Assembly: GCF_011386835.1 (NCBI RefSeq)
Contig: NC_088806.1
Span: 2,604,001 to 2,668,000 of the forward strand
Length of the DNA: 64,000 nucleotides
Direction of reading: 5' to 3'
Source: Chrysemys picta bellii
Lineage: Eukaryota
The translations under genes were made by a program, and so were the position numbers. The notes below the pieces were generated by a model that was not told the DNA's origin, searched no databases, and saw only the letters and a list, made by a program, of their open reading frames with translations. Positions 1 through 56,794 of this stretch are shown here, piece after piece (the stretch's first letter is position 1; each line of letters opens with the position of its first letter).

Positions 1-65
1 TAACCTTGAGTGAGGATACTCCCAGAGGGCACTGGGGCAGGGGAGGGGCTCAGGGCAGGACCTAC

Positions 66-209
66 CTGAGAGCAGCCCGATGCTCAGGTACAGGTGGGTC
101 AGGCTGATGGCGAAGGAAGCCAGGAACATGCCCAGCCCCGAGAGGAGGCCCCCGGCCATCACCACGGGGTGCGCACAGTACTGGGTGCTGAGGGCAGTGC
201 CCACCGGAC
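66..209 (-). CDS. SLC16A13: SLC16A13-like copy A, coding exon 2 (144 nt); the rest of the gene lies left of the window
   Basis: CAG|GT CCG GTG GGC ACT GCC CTC AGC ... CTG CTC TCA G|GTAGGT translates to [49 protein letters not shown]. Same length and phase as exon 2 of copies B and C. Confidence 0.9.
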
Positions 210-497
210 CTGCAGAGGGCAGCAGAGGGATACCGGTCGGGCCCCGTTACCCTGCAATGCAGCTGAGTCTGGGGGAGGAGTGGAGGTATGTGGCACTCAG
301 AGCACCCTCCTGTCCTGGACGATGGTGCAGAAAGTGGGGTTGGGAGAATCCCAGTTAAAAACTGCTGCCCCGCCCCAGAGGTGGCCGCATCTCAGCACCG
401 GGTGAGGGGTCCCTCAATAACCAGCCACCCCACCGGGGGAGGGATGAGACGCTCTGGCTAAAGGGGGTAGGGAGAAGGCCAGAGAGTCAATACTCAC

Positions 498-2304: not shown

Positions 2305-2459
2305 TCAGGGGTCCCCCATGGTCTCCTCCTCAGTTGTCGAGTCCATGGGGCAGGAGAAATAATTTGGCAGGGCAAGAAGGAGCAAACTTCCAGCGAGGAG
2401 AAAAGCCCCTGCTACAATGAAAGAGGCCGTGTAGTCCCCAGTCATGTCCCGCAGCCAAC
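2305..2459 (-). CDS. SLC16A13: SLC16A13-like copy B, coding exon 4 (terminal)
   Basis: TTCTAG|GT TGG CTG CGG GAC ATG translates to [51 protein letters not shown], with TGA at 2307-2305. Confidence 0.9.
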
Positions 2460-3430
2460 CTAGAACATACAATGTGTTGGGTTACCAAGAGCATACTGCA
2501 TGTGTCACCTAGAACCCAAAGTATCTAATTATTTAGACATCCTAGAACATACGATTATTTGCATGATCTAGAATGCACTACATGTTACCTGGAACCCATA
2601 ATATCTAATTCTCTAGACATCCCAGAATATATGTGGCTTTGAGTTACCTAGAGCGCACAATATGCATTTCCTAGAACCCCAAATGCCTCATTGCCTAGAC
2701 ATCCTGCACGAATTATCTAGGAATTACTGTAGTGTCACCTAAATCACAGAACACCTTGCTGTCTAGACGGACTAGAAGGTATGAAGTGATGGTTTACCTA
2801 GAAAGTACTGGAAGGGCTACCTAGAACCCCCAAACCTGATGGTTTGGACAGCCTAGAACATATCTGCTTGACAGTCTCACGGGACTATGCAGACCACATC
2901 ATGGATTATCTCAAACACATTTTCAGTGATACTTAGACTTCAGAGCACCATATTCTGTATATATCCTGCTGTTGTCTCTTGTCTTATAGTTAGATGGTAA
3001 GGACTTTGGGGGAGGGACCATCTTTGGATTCTATACTGCACCTAGCACAATCGAGTTCCAGTCCATGACAAGGGCTCCTATGTCTACAGTAATCAAAACA
3101 ATCACTAATAATGTTCTAGCTATCTGGCCTACATCAGGCATTAGCCTACATGATTTCAGGCTAGATAGGCCCACACAGTTTTATTGGCTACCTAGAACCC
3201 ATACTTAGAACCCAGAATGCCACAATTTAGTTCTCTGGTTTGGAGTCATCTTTAGATCATATGATAAGGGCTTTTCAGAGTTGTTAGAGCTACCTAGAAC
3301 CCAGTATATCTCAGCCTAGTTCCCCGGATTGGTACCCCCTTTCAACCATATTCCTAGGACTATTTAGACAATGGGAGGTTTGGGGAGACCTAGAACATGT
3401 TGTTCAACTAGAACCCAGGTCTTCCAAGTC
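2460..3430. repeat. Degenerate CCTAGAAC-rich repeat in intron 3 of copy B
   Basis: Many ACCTAGAAC/TCTAGA variants at short irregular spacing. Confidence 0.6.
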
Positions 3431-3876
3431 ACAGGCCAGGACCTTGTTTTGGGGGAAGGTTTAATTCCGGGGGTTACCTGTAATTAATGGGTCACCTACC
3501 TTCTTGTTTCCCTCCCTCCCCACAGCCCTCTCTATGAAGCTAGATCGATGAATTCATGCAAGAAAGGCTTAGAACTCATGAGAGGGGATGTCCACCCCCA
3601 CAAGACTGGACAGGGTGACAGTGGCCAAGTAGGGACTCTAGAGGGTAGTCCATAGTTACTCCCTGGGAGGAGGGAATTGGGAGGCTGGCGAACCCAGAGA
3701 CGGGGGAGAGGGGGAAGCCAGGACATAGGGCAGTGACTGGAGAGCCTGTGAGCTGGAACTTGGAGTAGAGGGCAGGCCCGGGTTCCCCTACCAGCCCCTG
3801 GGGATGTGGCAGAGACCAGGCAAAGGACAGTGGGCTGCCTGGGACCACTTGTCAGGAAAGACCTTTATCTGACTCC

Positions 3877-4050
3877 TTCCTCAATTTCTCCTAGTAGCAA
3901 CCGTCCCAAATATGGGATCCAAAAGGGACAGGGGAGCATGGTAGGAAAGAGAACCTGGTTCCTTTCCTCAATTTCTCCTAGTAGCAACCGTCCCAAATAT
4001 GGGATCCAAAAGGGACAGGGGAGCATGGTAGGAAAGAGAACCTGGTTCCT
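3877..4050. repeat. Perfect 87-bp tandem duplication next to the exon 3 donor
   Basis: 3877-3963 is identical to 3964-4050. Confidence 0.9.
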
Positions 4051-4053
4051 TAC

Positions 4054-4821
4054 CAGACAGAGGGGCCCCCACGAGGGAGCCAGCACTTTCCATCATTTGC
4101 ATGAGCCCAATCCCCTCCATGATGCGCCCCGTTCCCACAATCTCCGCCATGCCGGAAAACTGGAGGGGCACCAGGGCACCGGCGCAGAAGCCGTAGCAGA
4201 TGCAGAGGCCCATCAGGAGGGAGTAGCTCTGCCCCAGCGGCAGCAGCACCATGGAGAGGCCCGTCAGGACGGTCCAGAGGATCAGGCTGTGGACCAGGCG
4301 GACGGCGAAGCGGTCGGCCAGCCAGCCACCCGCCACGCGGCCGCACAGGTCAGCCACAGCGGCCGAGGACAGGAGAAAGGCGGCTCGGTATTCGTCAAAG
4401 CCCAGCTCCCGGGCGTGGGGCACCAGGTGGACGTAGGGTACGTAGTAGCCGGTGTCCACCAGGACGAAGGCCGCAGCGAACAGGAGGAAGGGCCTGTGGC
4501 AGGCCAGGCGTGGCTGGCAGAGGGAGGAGAAGGCTGGCAGCCACAGCCACCCCGCCTCCGGCGCGGACGCCTTGTTACCCTCTGTCTCCAACGGCCGCAG
4601 CAGAGCCCCGGCGGCCACCAGGTTGAAGGAGATGCTGGCCACCACCAGGAGGGCTCCCCGCCAGGCGTAGGTGTCCACCAGCAGCTGGAAGAGTGGGGAG
4701 AAGGCGAAGGAGGCCAGGCCCGCCCCCGAGACAGCCAGGCCCGTGGCGAAGGTCCGCCGCTTGGCGAAGTACTGGGCCACAGAAGCCACGGAAGGGGTGA
4801 AAACCAAGGCCCAGCCCAGCC
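4054..4821 (-). CDS. SLC16A13: SLC16A13-like copy B, coding exon 3 (768 nt)
   Basis: CAG|GG CTG GGC TGG ... TCT G|GTAAGG. Contains the MCT motifs [13 protein letters not shown] and the TM8 ADLCGR (D/R pair). Overlaps ORF 3968..4807. Confidence 0.93.
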
Positions 4822-5816
4822 CTGCAGGGGGGGGAGGGGGAAGGAAAGGGAACAGGTGACCAAAACCAGGAAGGGTGGGTCTAATCTGGGGGTGGGGCAG
4901 GTGGGAAACCGGGATGAATGGAGCATTCTAGATAATGCAAAGCATTGTATGTTCTAGGATGTCTAAACAATTAGATACTCTAGGGTCTAGGTGACACATG
5001 TCACATGTTCTAGGTAACCCAAGGCATTGTATGTTCTAGGTTGGCTGCGGGACATGACTGGGGAGAAAGAGTCAATGTCTAGGGGGGTCTAGCCCTTTAA
5101 CCCCTGGGGTGGGGGTGGGAGGGTCATTAGCAATTAGAGACACATCATCTCAAGCCTGGGATGGCAGAGTCTGGGATGGGGGGAGAACTCCTGGTCAGGC
5201 CTGCGAGTGGGGGGATCTAGGTGTCAGCTGCCACAATGCTGGGTTCTAGATCATTGCTCTGTCCTCTCTCCAGCTCGCCCGAGCTGGGGCTGGGAAGGAA
5301 CTGGGTGAAATGGACTGATCTGAGCTAGGCAGGAAATTGGGCTAGCGATGATCTAGGCCACACTCGTGAGCATGGAGATCTGGGCTAGAGCAACTCTGGA
5401 TGAGCCAGAGCAGAGGGTTCTAGATCTCAGAAGGGACAGCAGAGTCTGGGCCATGAGCACCACACGGCTCAAGAACCATAGCCCTGGGAGCTGTGGGTGT
5501 GTGGGGGATTTTCCACGGCTTAGCGTGCCATGGTCTAGCTCAACCATCAGATATGGGCTGGAAGGAGGAGTAGGCAGGAGGGATGGCGCAGGAGGCCAGA
5601 TTGGATGGTCACCTCCTGGTCTTAATGTCTAGGACCCATCTGGGAGGAGGAATGGCTGGAGAACCCGAAAAGAGACACCCCCCCCCAGGAACCCCTCTGG
5701 GCAACTATAACTAGACCATGGTGCACTGGGTTACCCAGAAGCCCTTGCTCCCAACCTTGAGCGAGGATACTCCCAGAGGGCACTGAGGCAGGGGAGGGGC
5801 TCAGGGCAGGACCTAC

Positions 5817-5960
5817 CTGAGAGCAGCCCGATGCTCAGGTACAGGTGGGTCAGGCTGGTGGCGAAGGAAGCCAGGAGCATGCCCAGCCCCGAGAGGAGGC
5901 CCCCGACCATCACCACGGGGCGGGCGCCGTACTGGGTGCTGAGGGCGCTGCTCACCGGAC
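5817..5960 (-). CDS. SLC16A13: SLC16A13-like copy B, coding exon 2 (144 nt)
   Basis: [49 protein letters not shown], with canonical AG/GT sites. Confidence 0.93.
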
Positions 5961-6177
5961 CTGCAGGGGGCGGCAGAGAGACACCGGTTGGGCCCCATTA
6001 CCCTGGGGGGCAGCCGAGTCTGGGGGAGAAGTGGGCTTGGGGGGGGGGCTTGAGGCCTCCCCCAGCAGGGGGTGCTTTGGGGAGCGGTGGGTGGGGGAAG
6101 GGGTTTCCCAGCTACTCCACTTCTGGGCCTGAGATTCTAGTAGCCCCCTTCCCCACCCCCCGGTGTCCCTCACTCAC

Positions 6178-6382
6178 CCCCTAGCTGCAGCACCGCGATC
6201 CCGATGGAGGTGACCCATGAGACACGTCCCGCCAGCTCTCCGAAGTACCCCACAAACTCCATGAAGAAGACGCCGAAGGAGCGGATCACCCCGAAAACCA
6301 GTGCCGACTGGAGGAAGCCGGCCAGCACCACCATCCAGCCCCAGCCCCCATCGGGGGGCTCGCGGCACGTGGGGTCTGCCAT
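6178..6382 (-). CDS. SLC16A13: SLC16A13-like copy B, first coding exon
   Basis: [40 protein letters not shown]..., the MCT signature PPDGGWGW, with a GTGAGT donor. Total CDS 205+144+768+155 = 1272 nt (423 aa). Confidence 0.92.
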
Positions 6383-6654
6383 GGGGTCCCCCGTTGCTGT
6401 TCCCTGGGGATGGGAAATCAGAAGTCGGGGGTGGAAAAACAAACCAGCTGAAGGGAAAGAGACAAGGGTCAGTCCATGAACTTTTATGCTGCAGGTTCTC
6501 TGGAGATCTAGTCCTCGATTCCTGAGACGCAGCTGGGGAAACTGAGGCACGGGGAGACAAAGGCTCCTGACAGCAACTCACTAGCACAGCTGATGACACA
6601 ATGCAGGATTCCTGGCTTCCAGCCTCCTATCCTGCTCCGCTACACCCCCTTCTC

Positions 6655-25438: not shown

Positions 25439-25656
25439 CTAGTCTCTGTCCTGGGAGGAATGTTCCCCAGAGGCTGGTGTCAATGGAGCCGGCTCTGCCC
25501 CTGCCTCCACCTGGGTGCCCCGGCAGGCAGGAGAGGAGGTGCCCAGACAGGAGAAGAAGTTGGGCAGAGTGACCAAAACCAGGCTCCCAGCCAAGAGGAA
25601 AGCCCCAGCTGCCAAGAAAGAGGCCATGTAGTCCCCAGTCATGTCCCGCAGCCAAC
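25439..25656 (-). CDS. SLC16A13: SLC16A13-like copy C, coding exon 4 (terminal)
   Basis: CCAG|GT TGG CTG CGG GAC ATG ACT translates to [24 protein letters not shown]...SQDRD*. Confidence 0.92.
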
Positions 25657-26318
25657 CTGGAACAGAGAAAGGACAGAATCATTTAGTGCAACAGCAGGAA
25701 AACCCAGGCTGAGCTAGAACAATAGCCAGAGAACATAGGGCAACCTAGAACACAAAGGCAATCGAGAATGGCACAAGAGCCAAGTGTGATCTAAAACAAC
25801 ATCCAGAGAGCACAGGGCAACTTAGAACATGAAGGTGACCTAGAATGTCATATGAACCCAAGGTGACCTAGAACAATATCCAGAGAATGTAGGGCAAACT
25901 AGAACATGGAGGTGACCTACAACACCATAAGAACCCAGGGTGACTTAGATCAAAACCTAGGGTGACCTAGAACCAGGGTGACCCAGAATGAGGTCACAAG
26001 AACCTTGTGGGGTCTAGCTGGTTGGAGCAGGGGGAACTGGGCGTCAGGACTGCTGGGTTCTATCCCCACCTCTGGGCCTGTCTCTACGGGCTACCAAATG
26101 GGGTTGGAGGGCAGCTAATCCCAAGCAAGATGATGTTCACGTGTCAACCACTGGTCCCAAGACCAGGGTGGGGGCCAGGAGTCTTGGTTCCAAGAAGGAC
26201 CAAGTCTATGACTTAAGGTTACGGGGAAAAAGGCAGGGTTGGGGATTGATTTACTGGGGGGGAGGAGCTCGTTTCCAATTAATTGAACGGGAGGAGAAGG
26301 AAGTCAGCGGCAATCTAC

Positions 26319-30968: not shown

Positions 30969-31585
30969 AGGATATAGGAGTATTCTTACAGTTGGGCATT
31001 TGTCCTGTCCGAAAAATAACTGATCAAGTGACTGGGCAACTATTTTAAAGCAGTAATTTAGTAGAACAGGAAGAGTTCATGGTCTCCAATAGGTAGGCTT
31101 AGAAGAATTACATTTCCCCCCCCCCCCCATCGGTAAGTGTTGGTTAGTGCCCATTCACCCAAACCGACAAACAGATATTGGCATCGATAGAGATCGAAAT
31201 TTACAGATCGGCAAAGCAACGTAGTGGTCCATACAGATGAAAGGAAATATCCTGAATTCCAGCTTTGTTCCGACACGCTTCTAGTTTTATGGCTACCAAG
31301 CCATAACTTTTTCAACCTCTACATCTGTTGGGCCATAGTTGTTCAACCAGCCCTTGTTTGAACTCAGGAAAAGGCAAAATGCAATGAAATGAAATTCTGA
31401 AAACACCCCACCGACAACATCCTGCCTGGAATACCGGATATCAGCCCCAGAATCCCTTGCTCCTGGACTTGGGTGAGGATGATCCCATGGTGCACTGGAT
31501 TACCCAGAAGCCTTTGCTCTCAGCCTTGAGCAAGGATACTCCCAGAGGGCACTGGGGCAGGGGAGGGGCTCAGGGCGGGACCTAC

Positions 31586-31729
31586 CTGAGAGCAGCCCGA
31601 TGCTCATGTACAGGTGGGTCAGGCTGGTGGCGAAGGAAGCCAGGAGCATGCCCAGCCCCGAGAGGAGGCCCCCGGCCATCACCACGGGGCGGGCGCCGTA
31701 CTGGGTGCTGAGGGCACTGCCCACCGGAC
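31586..31729 (-). CDS. SLC16A13: SLC16A13-like copy C, coding exon 2 (144 nt)
   Basis: [49 protein letters not shown], with canonical splice sites. Confidence 0.94.
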
Positions 31730-31884
31730 CTGCAGGGGGCGGCAGAGAGACACCGGGCGGGCCCTCGTTACCCTGTGATGCAGCAGAGTCTGGGGGAGGA
31801 GTGGGGTTCTCCCTCCTACCCTCCAAAAAAAAAAAAAAAAAAAAAAGAGGGTCAGGATCCCCCACTCACCACCACATAACTCAC

Positions 31885-51274: not shown

Positions 51275-51366
51275 CTGCGGGGGGGCCACAAGAGAGCAGG
51301 GGTCAGCGCCCTGAGCTGGGGGGGGGAGAACCCAGGAGTCCGGGCTCCCAGCCCCCCCCTGCTCTA

Positions 51367-52167
<801 letters not shown>

Positions 52168-52193
52168 TTACCACCATTAGATGTTGGCCCTTA

Positions 52194-52469
<276 letters not shown>

Positions 52470-52589
52470 CTAGGGGGTGGCACAGCCCCCCACCGTTCTC
52501 CTGTTCCGCACAGCCTCCCGTCCCCTCCCACTGACCCCTCTCACAATCCCCTGACCCCCTTCCTGTCCCCTCTTTGGCCCCTCCCACCT

Positions 52590-53525
52590 CCCTTCTGACC
52601 CCTCTCCATGAGCCCTCCAACTGCCCCTGACCACTCCCACCTCCCCTGGACCGCTCCCCCTGATCCCTTCCTGACTCCACCCACCTCCCCTTGTTCCTCC
52701 CACCTCCCATTGACCCCTCCCCCTGATCGCTTCCTGACTCCACCCACCTCCCCTGTTCCTCCCACCTCCCATTGACCCCTCCCCCTGATCGCTTCCTGAC
52801 TCCACCCACCTCCCCTGTTCCTCCCACCTCCCATTGACCCCTCCCCCTGATCGCTTTCTGACTCCACCCACCTCCCCTTGTTCCTCCCACCTCCCATTGA
52901 CCCCTCCCCCTGATCGCTTCCTGACTCCACCCACCTCCCCTTGTTCCTCCCATCTCCCATTGACCCCTCCCCCGATCGCTTCCTGACTCCACCCACCTCC
53001 CCTGTTCCTCCCACCTCCCATTGACCCCTCCCCCAATCGCTTCCTGACTCCACCCACCTCCCCTTGTTCCTCCCACCTCCCATTGACCCCTCCCCCTGAT
53101 CGCTTCCTGACTCCACCCATCTCCCCTGTTCCTCCCACCTCCCATTGACCCCTCCCCCTGATCGCTTCCTGACTCCACCCACCTCCCCTTGTTCCTCCCA
53201 CCTCCCATTGACCCCTCCCCCTGATCGCTTCCTCACTCCACCCACCTCCCCTGTTCCTCCCACCTCCCACTGACCCCTCCCCCTGATCGCTTCCTGACTC
53301 CACCCACCTCCCCTTGTTCCTCCCACCTCCCATTGACCCCTCCCCCTGATCGCTTCCTGACTCCACCCACCTCCCCTGTTCCTCCCACCTCCCATTGACC
53401 CCTCCCCCAATCACTTCCTGACTCCACCCACCTCATCTGGTCCCTCCCATTGACCCCTCCCCCTGGTCCCTTCCTGACTCCATCCACCTCACCTGGTCCC
53501 TCCCACTTCCCATTGACCCCTCTCA
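52590..53525. repeat. About 61-bp C-rich intronic tandem repeat
   Basis: CTCCCATTGACCCCTCCCCCTGATCGCTTCCTGACTCCACCCACCTCCCC... about 14 units. Confidence 0.92.
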
Positions 53526-53577
53526 CCCCTCCCCACCCCCACCCCTCTCCCAGGTCCCGCCCCTCAGCGCTCCATAC

Positions 53578-53766
53578 CGGTGTGGACGGCGCGGTGGGAG
53601 GCCAGGTTGCCCTTGTAGCGAAAGGCTGAGCGGCAGAGCTGGCACTTGAACGGTTTGTTGTCGTGGGGGGCGGCCGCCGGGGCCTGCCCCCCGGCCGCCC
53701 CCCCTTCCTCCCCCTCCTCCTCGTCCAGGCCCAGCTCGCAGGCCCCGCAGCCGTATGGCCCTGCAC
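53578..53766 (-). CDS. BCL6B: BCL6B exon with first zinc finger (189 nt)
   Basis: GAGPYGCGACELGL...HDNKPFKCQLCRSAFRYKGNLASHRAVHT. Confidence 0.94.
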
Positions 53767-53819
53767 CTGCGGAGGAGGGGTGAGAAGGTTCAGGGCATGG
53801 CCCGGGGGGCTCCCCAATA

Positions 53820-54250
53820 CTCAGAGCCCACTCCGCAGCATATGGGGCTGTCTGACCCCCAAACAGAGTGTATGGGACCGGCCCCTCCCCCCACCCCAGA
53901 TGTGTATGGGACCGGCCCCTCCCCTGCCCCACAGCGCATATGGGACCAGCCCCTCCCTCACCCCACAGCGTGTATGGGACCGGCTCCTCCCTCACCCCAC
54001 AGTGCGTATGGGACCGGCTCCTCCCTCACCCCACAGTGCGTATCAGACCGGCCCCTCCCTCACCCCACAGCGTGTATGGGACCGGCCCCTCCCCCACCCC
54101 ACAGTGCGTATCAGACCGGCTCCTCCCCCACCCCACAGCGTGTATGGGACCGGCCCCTACCCCCACAGTGTGTATATGAGACCAGTCCCTCCCCCCCACC
54201 CCACAGCGCGTATGGGACCGGCCCCTCCCCCCTCCCAGTGCATGGGCCTG
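53820..54250. repeat. About 33-bp intronic repeat (GTATGGGACCGGCCCCTCCC...CACAG); also at 54400-54620
   Basis: Recurrent ATGGGACCGG units. Confidence 0.82.
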
Positions 54251-54272
54251 AGCCCCCTTCCTCGCCCCTCAC

Positions 54273-54346
54273 CTGCTGCGGGCTGGGGCGGCCCCTGGGG
54301 AAGGCGCTGGGTGCACAGGGGGCACGGTGATGGGGCGGGGGGCGGC
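54273..54346 (-). CDS. BCL6B: BCL6B short linker exon (74 nt)
   Basis: CCCCGCAG|G CCG CCC ... GCA G|GTGAGG. Phase 2 in and phase 1 out, exactly bridging the flanking exons. The sequence itself is poorly conserved. Confidence 0.75.
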
Positions 54347-54643
54347 CTGCGGGGAGATGGGAAAGGGAGGGGCTTAGCTATCAAGAGGCATAGCTCCTCC
54401 CCCCCCTCAGCATATGGAACAAGTGCCTCTCCTCCCCCCACCGGCTCAGCATATGGACCGGGTGCCTCTCCCCCGCAATATATGGGACCTGGCACCCCTC
54501 TCAACTGATGTACGGGACCGGGCACCCCTCCCCCACTCAGTGTATGGGACTGGGCGCTCCTCCCCCTCCCAGCGTATATGGGACCAGGTGCCCCTCCCCC
54601 GTATATGGGACCGGTCGCCCCTCCCCCCAGCTCAGCAACTCAC

Positions 54644-55135
54644 CCGCAGGGGGCGCTGTCATGCTGGGTCCTGGGGCCGCCCTCGTCTTCCCCGCCACGG
54701 CAGACGCCTCGGTCTCCACCGGCCGGGGGCTCGGGAGGGGACAGGGGGCCGGGGGGCTGGGGACCGGCCCCGCCTCCTCCCCCCACCCCCTCCTCCCGCA
54801 GGGAGTTCAGGACGATGAACTTGTATTTCTTCCAGTTGCAGGCTTTGGGGTCGGGGACGCAGCCGCTGGACTCGCGGGGGGTGGCGGGGTGCCCCTTGGA
54901 GCGCGACGGGCTGTGGGGGGGGCCCCGCTCCCCCCCTGGGGGTGCCCCTCCAGAATCCTTCGCCGGAGGCCTGGCTGGAACCGATCGCAGGGGGGCCCCT
55001 GGGCTCGGCCCCTCTGGGTGGAGACCCCCTGCGGGCACCGTCCCACTGGCGTCTGGAGGTCCTTGGAGGGGGTCCTGGGGCTTGGGGTCTGCTGGGGAGG
55101 GGAGCGGCTTGGAGTAGAAGCTAGCGCGGTCGTAA
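54644..55135 (-). CDS. BCL6B: BCL6B middle-region exon (492 nt) with RD2-like motif
   Basis: SYDRASF...VPDPKACNWKKYKFIVLNS...; frame checked codon by codon from the acceptor. Confidence 0.92.
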
Positions 55136-55199
55136 CTGCAAGAGAGAAGGATGAAATGAAGGGGGGCAGCTACCCACTCCCCCCCTGCTCTGAGCGAGT

Positions 55200-55645
55200 C
55201 CCCGCCCTGGGGCTGGGTGGGAGCCGGCGCCCCCTAGAGGGGACAGGCCCCTGCCCCATTCCACGCCCCCCTGAGCCAGCCAGTCCCTGCCCTGGGGCCG
55301 GGTGGGAGCCGGCGCCCCCTAGAGGGGACAGGCCCCTGCCCCGTTCCCCGCCCCCCTGAGCCAGCCAGTCCCCGCCCTGGGGCCGGGTGGGAGCCGGCGC
55401 CCCCTAGAGGGGACAGGCCCCTGCCCCATTCCCCGCCCCCCTGAGCCAGCCAGTCCCTGCCCTGGGGCCGGGTGGGAGCCAGCGCCCCCTAGAGGGGCCA
55501 GGCCCCTGCCCCATTCCCCCACCCCCCTGAGCCAGCCAGTCCCCGTCCTGGGGCCGGGTGGGAGCCAGCGCCCCCTAGAGGGGCCAGGCCCCTGCCCCAT
55601 TCCCCGCCCCCTAAGCCAGCCAGTCCCCGCCCTGGGGCGCCCCCT
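55200..55645 (-). repeat. 85-86-bp intronic tandem repeat carrying CCTCTAGGGGGCGC on the minus strand, 5 units
   Basis: Motif at 55227, 55312, 55397, 55482 and 55568. Confidence 0.9.
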
Positions 55646-55647
55646 AC

Positions 55648-55869
55648 CTGGCCTGGACGAAGCGGTGACAGGCGTCCACCACGTGCTCCATCTGCAGGTA
55701 GGTGGCAGCGCTGAGCAGGGCTGGGACGGAGGCTGGGGTGAGGGGCAGGCGGGAGGTGTACATGAAATCCAGCAGGGCCTGGAAGCCCCCGGGCTGGATG
55801 GATCCAGGCAGGGTGATGACACTGACCTCGCTGCCCCCCTGGGCCAGGAAGATGGAGTAGAAGAAGCCA
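55648..55869 (-). CDS. BCL6B: BCL6B BTB/POZ exon (222 nt)
   Basis: SGFFYSIF...FQALLDFMYTSRL...ATYLQMEHVVDACHRFVQA. Confidence 0.96.
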
Positions 55870-56794
55870 CTGGCGGGGGGTGGGGGTGTGGGGGGGGGGA
55901 GAAGGGTTAGGGGACTACAACTCCCAGACAGACCACACCTCCCCTGTGGCCACGCCTCCCCGTCCCACAATGGGGCGTGGCCCAGCCTCAGCCTCCCCAT
56001 GGCCACGCCTCCTCAGCCCCTTCTCCCCCACCCGGATAGGGGCTCAGACTCTGGCCTGGCGCCCCCAGCTGTGGATGCAGATGGGCGTGGCCCCCCCTTG
56101 CTGGGTGGTCCCACCAACTTCCAGCCATGTCACTGCCCCCCGCCCCGTGCCCCACACAGACCCGCCCCACGGCCACGATGCAAAGCCCGCCCCCATGAGC
56201 CCCTCAGCCATGCCCGCCCCCATGTCCCCACCCAGCTGCGCCCCACCCTTCCCAACTACGCCCCCTACCCGCAGTGCCCCCTCACAGCCGCGCCCACCGC
56301 TGCACAGCCACGCCCTCGCTAGCCACGCCCACTCCTTCCCAGCCCCACCCTCTCTAGCCACACAGCCACGCCCCCGCACGTTCCCAGCCCCGCCCTCTCT
56401 AGCCACACAGCCACGCCCTCTCTGGCCACGCCCTCACCCGTCCCGGCCACGCCCCTCTAACCACAGACTGATGCCCTCCCTAGCCACGCCCCCAGCCTTC
56501 CCAGCCACTCCCGTTCTAGGCACACTCAATCCTTCCCAGCCACGCCCTCTCTAGCCACGCCCTACCCCTTCCCAGCCACGCCCCCACCAGACAGAGCAAC
56601 ACCCTCTCTAGCCACGCCTCCAGCCTTGACCTCCCTGGCCACGCCCACCTCAGCCCAGCAAGCCCACTCCAGCCACGCCCCTCTAGCCCCACAACACCCG
56701 TTCACAGCAACGCCCCTCTCTAGCCACGCCCACCCCTTCCCACCCCTGCCCTCTCCGGCCACGCCCCCAGACCTTCCCAGCCCCCCCCCCTCAC

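Follow-up and report, generated by a model that had tools for sequence, protein, structure and literature searches.

The minus-strand "monocarboxylate transporter 13-like" (SLC16A13-like) gene of Chrysemys picta bellii carries two long complementary sequences, one on each side of its third exon. This arrangement raises the question whether the repeat is an RNA element kept by selection for controlling the use of exon 3, or the remnant of a mutation. The locus was analyzed in a window of 64,000 nucleotides, which contains 216 N. The reading favored here, with a probability of about 0.8, is that the repeat is the scar of a single inverted duplication on the stem of Durocryptodira that has drifted neutrally since, in a gene that is spliced canonically.

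The host gene has four exons, all on the minus strand; its model was taken from joints in RNA-like contigs and from the reading frames (Table 1). Exon 3 starts with two bases of a split codon and finishes with one, so its removal preserves the frame. The 768 nt and the symmetric phase that a preliminary description of this DNA had given for exon 3 are thus borne out by the contig joints and the frame. The exon codes for residues 118-372 of a 423-aa MCT13-like protein, and its product shows a Pfam MFS_1 match (E = 1.3e-24). All 255 of 255 residues are identical to the Chrysemys picta bellii protein P0127, 'monocarboxylate transporter 13-like', and the Chrysemys entry comprises four listed accessions with one common 423-aa sequence. 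The counterpart proteins in Gopherus, Chelonia, Mauremys and Terrapene are 90-94% identical, those in Pelusios and Carettochelys 81% and 73%. The MFS domain and this orthology place the predicted product in the SLC16 / monocarboxylate transporter family.

Table 1. Parts of the host gene, repeat arms and motif array, with positions in the window.
Feature	Position	Strand	Basis
Exon 1, coding part	6176..6382	-	ATG at 6382; ORF 6170-6550; joint 5958>6176; protein numbering
Exon 2, 142 nt	5817..5958	-	Joints 4820>5816 and 5958>6176; ORF
Upstream arm, inverted copy of the source in intron 2	4923..5064	-	Repeat search and turtle comparison
Exon 3, 768 nt	4054..4821	-	Joints 2457>4052 and 4820>5816 in RNA-like contigs
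Acceptor-like motif array, 3' part of intron 3	2460..3420	-	TRF and motif counts
Downstream arm, source copy	2435..2576	-	Repeat search; orthologous in 10/10 turtle species
Exon 4, coding part to stop codon	2305..2459	-	ORF 2305-2472; exon 3-exon 4 joint

The two arms that bracket exon 3 are gap-free reverse complements of each other over 142 nt with 16 mismatches, as established by direct count and repeat search, which corresponds to 89% complementarity at a spacing of 2346 nt. None of the mismatches falls within 2435-2474, and the first 40 nt are therefore identical in both arms. These figures agree with those of the preliminary description. The similarity ends at both limits of the arms, where the adjoining 30-mers agree at no more than 9/30 and 7/30 positions. 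As the boundary of exon 4 lies at 2459, the downstream arm consists of the first 25 nt of exon 4 (2435-2459) and the last 117 nt of intron 3 with the AG acceptor. The upstream arm lies within intron 2, on the 5' side of the exon 3 acceptor and 101 nt away from it.

The intronic portion of the downstream arm comprises the last ~1.5 units of a minisatellite with a period of ~80 nt, and the arm forms the terminal piece of the acceptor-like motif array in intron 3. Tandem repeats with a period of 80 were detected by TRF at 2503-2704. The array motif reads CCTAGAAC on the plus strand and GUUCUAGG in the pre-mRNA; nine exact copies are located at 2459-3396, and the whole window harbors 18 copies versus 2.0 expected. 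An apparent tandem duplication of 87 bp, perfect in the Chrysemys sequence, lies at 3877-4051.

In BLAST searches of the 64-kb window the arms matched only each other, the neighboring minisatellite units and the start of exon 4 in the paralogous copy C. Copy C is matched at this exon 4 start alone (25632-25664) and has no inverted copy, in line with the earlier statement that it lacks a counterpart. The depth of contigs over the arms was ~1.3-1.8x the local baseline, versus ~100-500x over the true repeats at 2855-3005 and 3610-3911. An Alu-like transposon origin of the arms was rejected on the grounds of this low-copy depth and of the BLAST matches in the window, and the depth also supports the earlier view that the arms are not derived from transposable elements.

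The upstream arm could in principle be a product of misassembly in the reference genome, and contigs from a short-read graph do break exactly at the shared 40-mer (2446-2466 and 5033-5053). However, such breaks are expected from a repeated 31-mer. Two further organisms provide contigs that span both junctions between arm and flank, and the same arrangement is found in eight independently assembled species. The preliminary description had allowed for an arm that is absent and owed to misassembly; junction-spanning contigs and species assemblies contradict this, and the probability of an artefact is negligible.

The comparison covered ten turtle species from Durocryptodira and Trionychia. Both arms are present in all eight sampled members of Durocryptodira (Chrysemys, Trachemys, Terrapene, Chelonoidis, two Mauremys, Chelonia and Dermochelys). 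The upstream copy is absent from both sampled Trionychia, Pelodiscus and Carettochelys, though the source region is there. Pelodiscus was used as the reference for the empty site, as intron 2 of Carettochelys does not align. Intron 2 of Pelodiscus aligns up to position 5073 of the window and resumes at 4909, and the homology thus ends cleanly, within ~10 nt of either limit of the upstream arm. It cannot be taken as an untouched empty site, since ~760 nt of unrelated sequence occupy it in Pelodiscus. Taken together, the distribution and the Pelodiscus alignment point to a single inverted insertion on the stem of Durocryptodira, after the split from the soft-shelled turtles. All upstream arms are separated from all downstream arms by only four alignment columns, at two of which the upstream arm retains the state of the softshell source. 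The distance between paralogous arms is 0.112 versus an orthologous distance of 0.069-0.088 across the crown split. These two observations indicate that the copy is only modestly older than the crown, and it is by this distance argument only that a loss in softshells, as the alternative to a gain in Durocryptodira, is excluded. The target flank contains CTAGAC motifs resembling the minisatellite motif, and the same is found in Pelodiscus. In the compared flanks of Pelodiscus and the window, divergence is such that exact junction microhomology could not be assigned.

The arms were predicted to pair very stably. The energy of the arm-arm duplex is -221.8 kcal/mol versus -49 +/- 6 kcal/mol for shuffled partners, so that chance is no explanation for the complementarity. 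In the minimum-free-energy fold of a 2750-nt pre-mRNA segment 132 of the 142 positions of the upstream arm pair with the downstream arm, and RNA folding thereby agrees, at the level of prediction, with the earlier proposal that the arms can pair in the pre-mRNA. The predicted 142-bp duplex would constitute the long, nearly perfect intramolecular dsRNA that characterizes ADAR substrates. Circularization in minigenes requires no more than inverted repeats of ~30-40 nt (Liang and Wilusz 2014, PMC4201285), and both introns flanking exon 3 carry complementary sequence above this minimum. An effect of the predicted duplex on RNA processing is plausible.

Pairing and placement would suit a long-range RNA bridge that hides the exon 4 acceptor, loops out exon 3 and is maintained in its complementarity by purifying selection, with regulated exon 3 skipping or exon 3 circular RNA as its output. 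The geometry is correct, with arms on both sides of exon 3; the stable duplex dominates the predicted fold, short flanking inverted repeats can drive circularization (PMC4201285), and the repeat is retained in 8/8 sampled Durocryptodira. Retention is uninformative, however, because whole introns align at 88-92% between the repeat-bearing species. The upstream arm evolves at 0.225 substitutions per site, the intron background (42nd percentile of 224 intronic windows), and the intronic part of the downstream arm at 0.256. Within the upstream arm the 40 nt that stem from the exon also change at 0.225, the same rate as in the remainder of the arm and in the introns; the rate at the true exon 4 start is 0.04. 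No compensatory double changes occurred in 120 columns across the eight species. Two distal columns that seemed to co-vary by clade were rejected as evidence: one reflects parallel CpG decay (CG to CA or TG), the other a single A-to-G shared by both arms of Dermochelys (around alignment column 133), which lies within chance expectation (estimate about 0.1). The number of units is variable too, as the upstream arms of Chelonoidis and Mauremys contain roughly one to three extra units of ~82 nt. Only canonical splicing was seen in assembled RNA contigs. A selected RNA bridge is therefore very unlikely.

The perfect 40-nt block could alternatively be due to ongoing gene conversion between the inverted arms, especially over this exon-derived part. 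The block is perfect in the three emydids Chrysemys, Trachemys and Terrapene, and conversion clearly operates nearby, between the paralogues B (the host gene) and C, which share 93.5% identity in exon 2 plus its flanks versus 72% in exon 3. Yet the perfect block is confined to these emydids, and the other five repeat-bearing species show two to five mismatches in it, CpG decay included, as is visible in the upstream arm. Conversion should make an arm resemble the partner of its own species, but own and foreign partners fit equally well in the eight species (14.0 versus 13.7 mismatches; paired fraction 0.9259 versus 0.9262 for shuffled species pairings over 120 columns). The four fixed differences between upstream and downstream arms likewise mean that on a tree the arms would cluster by position and not by species. 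The Dermochelys A-to-G, which might have been taken for a conversion tract, does not exceed chance as stated above. A clean run of 40 nt has P = 0.06 if the 16 mismatches are independent and P = 0.26 if adjacent mismatches are counted as single events, and it is thus not improbable. Conversion between the arms has even less to recommend it than the RNA bridge and is most improbable. Of the preliminary description, the geometry and the pairing potential stand, while its evolutionary argument does not: the identity was said to hint at selection or ongoing conversion, which the rates, the exchange of partners, the covariation tests and the emydid-only block do not support. The identity profile across turtles is one of uniform neutral decay, the very outcome that the description had set against its own proposal.

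The neutral scar of one inverted duplication accounts best for these data. About 142 bp over the boundary between intron 3 and exon 4 would have been duplicated in inverted orientation 2.3 kb farther upstream, in intron 2, in the stem lineage of the hard-shelled cryptodiran turtles after the split from soft-shelled ones. The mechanism that we infer as most likely is template switching, either in replication or in the repair of a break. Both arms would have drifted as ordinary intron sequence since the insertion, and it is only the slow change of turtle DNA that keeps them matching at 81-90% across species.

Splicing proceeds canonically from exon 2 to exon 3 to exon 4. This is supported by two RNA-like runs, taken from separate studies, each of which has one 846-nt contig that joins exons 2, 3 and 4; the runs are presumed to be RNA, and the evidence consists of assembled contigs, from which rare isoforms are dropped. 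A joint between exon 2 and exon 4 was not seen in the contigs of the two runs, whose reach does not extend to rare isoforms, and the back-splice joint from the exon 3 donor to its acceptor was absent from the same contigs, which drop circular junctions. Concerning editing, the mRNA contigs have no differences in 2435-2459 and a low-depth intronic contig (4957-5193) has one other letter in 237, both being consensus contigs without matched DNA. If the long duplex that the pre-mRNA can form does give rise to circular RNA, exon 3 skipping or A-to-I editing, these would be minor by-products that are not under selection. It can tentatively be proposed, as a possibility with the odds against it, that in Durocryptodira a fraction of pre-mRNAs pairs the arms and yields a 768-nt exon 3 circRNA, an in-frame skipped mRNA or edited arms, and that softshells do not. 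Mauremys and Chelonoidis, as carriers of extra units, might form more of such products.

The turtle repeat resembles template-switch mutations, which generate a perfect inverted repeat instantly and without transposon hallmarks, and which have a single origin followed by ordinary decay. Typical events of this kind are reported to involve tens of bases, copied over distances of up to a few hundred; the turtle event is longer and longer-range, with 142 nt over 2.3 kb. As in the mutations of Loytynoja and Goldman 2017 (PMC5453318), a nearby stretch on the same chromosome was likewise copied as its reverse complement. Template switching can also generate RNA hairpins (PMC8794818). With its nearby reverse-complement source on the same chromosome and its single origin, the upstream arm appears to be an inverted templated insertion.

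Flanking complements that promote circularization are usually pairs of inverted Alu or other repeats. Unlike such Alu-type pairs, the turtle arms are gene-derived and single-copy, and one of them reaches across the acceptor of the next exon into 25 nt of its coding sequence. The shared trait is that the complementary sequences flank an internal exon with canonical splice sites, as in Liang and Wilusz 2014 (PMC4201285), and the turtle arms are far longer than the minimum given there. Comparable in another respect are intronic complementarities through which an exon could be looped out and a splice site masked. Those of the Dscam docking/selector sites and of conserved intronic complementary boxes act as conserved long-range RNA structures in the regulation of alternative splicing and are recognized by raised conservation and compensatory substitutions. 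In the turtle arms both signs were tested and not found.

No long-standing question hinges on the locus. Its main value is that of a calibrated negative, as a design-like, exon-bracketing repeat with a 40-nt core is best explained by one origin and decay at the neutral rate. If the repeat does act in cis, the locus would amount to a natural experiment in which a repeat was gained on one dated branch of the turtle phylogeny, and if back-splicing is confined to the lineages with the upstream arm, it would provide a clean natural test of repeat-driven circularization. For claims of this kind, the comparison of arm complementarity within and between species is a quick and decisive test.

The host gene of the inverted repeat, the MCT13-like copy B, lies on the minus strand, and RNA-like contigs define three GT..AG introns (5959-6175, 4822-5816 and 2460-4053). 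The exon bounds in the table were taken from the joints of these contigs together with the reading frames. Exon 3 encodes the MFS_1 domain, and its product is identical at 255 of 255 positions to residues 118-372 of the Chrysemys picta bellii protein "monocarboxylate transporter 13-like" (423 aa). Within the first 12 kb, a repeat search gave no inverted pair longer than the two arms, which measure 142 nt, are 89% complementary and lie 2346 nt apart. Direct comparison of the arms gave 16 mismatches, none of them within 2435-2474, and the similarity stops abruptly at either end. The repeat itself is thus confirmed as the preliminary description had it, and the mapped exons and introns agree with the geometry proposed there, in which the arms flank exon 3 and one of them spans the exon 4 acceptor. 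A functional and selective reading of the repeat is not supported.

Coordinates of the inverted repeat, the host gene (copy B) and related features
Feature	Position	Strand	Remarks
Downstream arm	2435-2576	minus	exon 4 (first 25 nt), AG, intron 3 (117 nt)
Upstream arm	4923-5064	minus	inside intron 2; exon 3 acceptor 101 nt downstream
Exon 1, coding part	6176-6382	minus	contig joints and frames
Exon 2	5817-5958	minus	contig joints and frames
Exon 3	4054-4821	minus	768 nt; both ends in split-codon phase 1
Exon 4, coding part	2305-2459	minus	contig joints and frames
CCTAGAAC motif copies	2459-3396 and 25744-25973		intron 3 of copy B and of copy C, respectively
Copy A	523-681 and 2-283		exons 1-2 only
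Copy C	~25.4-32.1 kb

Misassembly was rejected as a source of the repeat, because the DNA contigs obtained from two other organisms (runs X13 and X14) extend over the two arms and across each junction between arm and flank. These contigs are interrupted solely at the 40-mer shared by the arms, where a k-mer graph must break. Contig depth over the arms is ~1.3-1.8x baseline, whereas over true repeats of intron 3 (2855-3005 and 3610-3911) it reaches 100-500x the local baseline in both DNA runs. The exon-derived portion of the arms also matches the start of exon 4 in copy C and is therefore truly gene sequence. This match and the low-copy depth exclude a transposon origin and bear out the earlier view that the arms are gene-derived.

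For a comparison among turtles, orthologous proteins were located and their genes fetched with introns from Mauremys reevesii, M. mutica, Chelonia, Dermochelys, Trachemys, Terrapene, Chelonoidis, Carettochelys and Pelodiscus. Both arms occur at the same positions in all eight Durocryptodira, with a complementarity of, for example, 90% in Chelonia and 81% in M. reevesii. The source region is present in both Trionychia, including the minisatellite in Pelodiscus, but an inverted copy was absent from intron 2 of Pelodiscus and Carettochelys. Intron 2 of Pelodiscus aligns with that of Chrysemys up to window position 5073 and resumes at 4909, within ~10 nt of each arm end. Only four alignment columns split all upstream from all downstream arms, and in two of these the upstream arm keeps the softshell source state. 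The mean paralogous distance is 0.112, compared with orthologous distances of 0.069-0.088 across the crown split. From these alignments we infer that one inverted insertion took place on the durocryptodiran stem, somewhat earlier than the crown radiation. It presumably dates back roughly 100 million years or more. An ancient inverted templated insertion that has since decayed neutrally best explains the arm pair, a further case of an event type known from PMC5453318 and PMC8794818. Exactly at the upstream-arm site, Pelodiscus carries ~760 nt of unrelated sequence (L009:3390-4148, its orthologous locus), perhaps inserted in that lineage alone, perhaps an ancestral stretch that the arm displaced on insertion.

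The perfect identity of the exonic part had been taken as a hint of selection or ongoing conversion, which four independent sequence-based tests do not support. When partners were swapped over the 120 columns common to all species, upstream arms had on average 14.0 mismatches with their own downstream arm versus 13.7 with those of other species; the paired fraction (Watson-Crick plus G-U) was 0.9259 with the own partner versus 0.9262 +/- 0.0011 with deranged partners. No compensatory double changes were detected in 39 variable or mismatched columns. By parsimony on the eight-species tree, the upstream arm accumulated 0.225 substitutions per site, which is the intronic background rate (42nd percentile among 224 intronic windows of 142 nt, whose mean is 0.247); its exon-derived 40 nt also show 0.225, versus 0.04 at the true exon 4 start. 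Finally, the perfect 40-nt block is limited to the three emydids, and 2-5 mismatches occur in this stretch in the remaining five species, some of them at CpG sites that decayed independently to CA or TG. Given the mismatch count, a clean 40-nt run would arise with P = 0.06, rising to 0.26 when neighbouring mismatches are treated as one event. The persistence of the repeat is no evidence of selection either, since entire introns of these turtles align at 88-92%.

As the preliminary description suggested, the arms are predicted to be able to pair in the pre-mRNA. The duplex energy is -221.8 kcal/mol versus -49 +/- 6 for shuffled partners, and the minimum-free-energy fold of a 2750-nt segment pairs 132 of 142 upstream-arm bases with the downstream arm. 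In PMC4201285, inverted repeats of ~30-40 nt were enough for circularization in minigenes. A measurable yet unselected by-product of arm pairing is conceivable from this modelling, though we consider it unlikely. Two presumed RNA runs from the window's organism (X15 and X17, different studies) each contain one 846-nt contig with 53 nt of exon 2, the entire exon 3 and 24 nt of exon 4, as well as the exon 1-exon 2 joint. Neither an exon 2-exon 4 joint nor a strand-back joint at exon 3 was listed among these assembled contigs, from which rare isoforms or circular forms could escape, and the 256 codons of exon 3 are present in every annotated isoform. The mRNA contigs, a consensus in which partial editing could escape, show no difference over the 25 exonic nt of the downstream arm; an intronic contig of low depth that spans most of the upstream arm differs in one of 237 letters. 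This shows canonical splicing as the main outcome and nothing beyond it.

Both RNA-like runs also contain a second exon 1-exon 2 joint (5960 to 6186) in which 8 additional letters separate the two sides and 11 letters differ. The most likely source is a paralogue A or C transcript aligned onto copy B, in which case expression of at least one other copy is expected. The annotated isoform X2 of the sea turtle Caretta caretta (protein P0140, 379 aa) falls 48 aa short of the 427-aa form; this approximates the size of exon 2, though only roughly, as 142 nt does not divide evenly by three.

The intronic portion of the downstream arm forms the tail of a minisatellite with a period of ~80 nt. The minisatellite motif, CCTAGAAC, has 18 occurrences in the window versus 2.0 expected, of which nine fall within intron 3 of copy B and three within that of copy C, and the array also precedes exon 4 in Pelodiscus. 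The transcript form, GUUCUAGG, is acceptor-like, and the array amounts to a row of decoy-like 3' splice sites ahead of the last exon. The array evolves at the background rate and is thus probably just a minisatellite. Judging from its unit gains, the upstream arm behaves like one too: it is longer by roughly one ~82-nt unit in Chelonoidis (L006:2829-3052), two in M. reevesii (L001:4300-4581) and three in M. mutica (L008:2803-3178), which gives these species several alternative pairing registers. The high-copy repeats of intron 3 are dispersed, and many contigs end loosely at 3749-3796. On the intron side, adjoining the exon 3 donor, lies a perfect 87-bp tandem duplication (3877-4051; 2.0 copies, 100% identical), the inner copy of which has GA in place of the real donor's GT. 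The unit is single in all seven other aligned species, and contigs of organisms E and F skip one unit; the duplication is either a very recent Chrysemys-specific event or an assembly duplication.

Among the three tandem paralogues in the window (A, B and C), exon 2 with ~100 nt of each adjoining intron is 93.5% identical between B and C (5716-6038 vs 31485-31808) and 91.5% between B and A (vs 2-283), whereas exon 3 of B and C shares only 72% identity. This looks like gene conversion restricted to the exon 1-2 region. Inspection by eye suggested that a gene of the ZBTB type follows downstream of the cluster of transporters (ORFs with C2H2 zinc-finger-like and BTB-like sequence, 51364-56006, minus strand); coding-looking, low-complexity tandem repeats fill much of 34-36, 40-41 and 52-53 kb.
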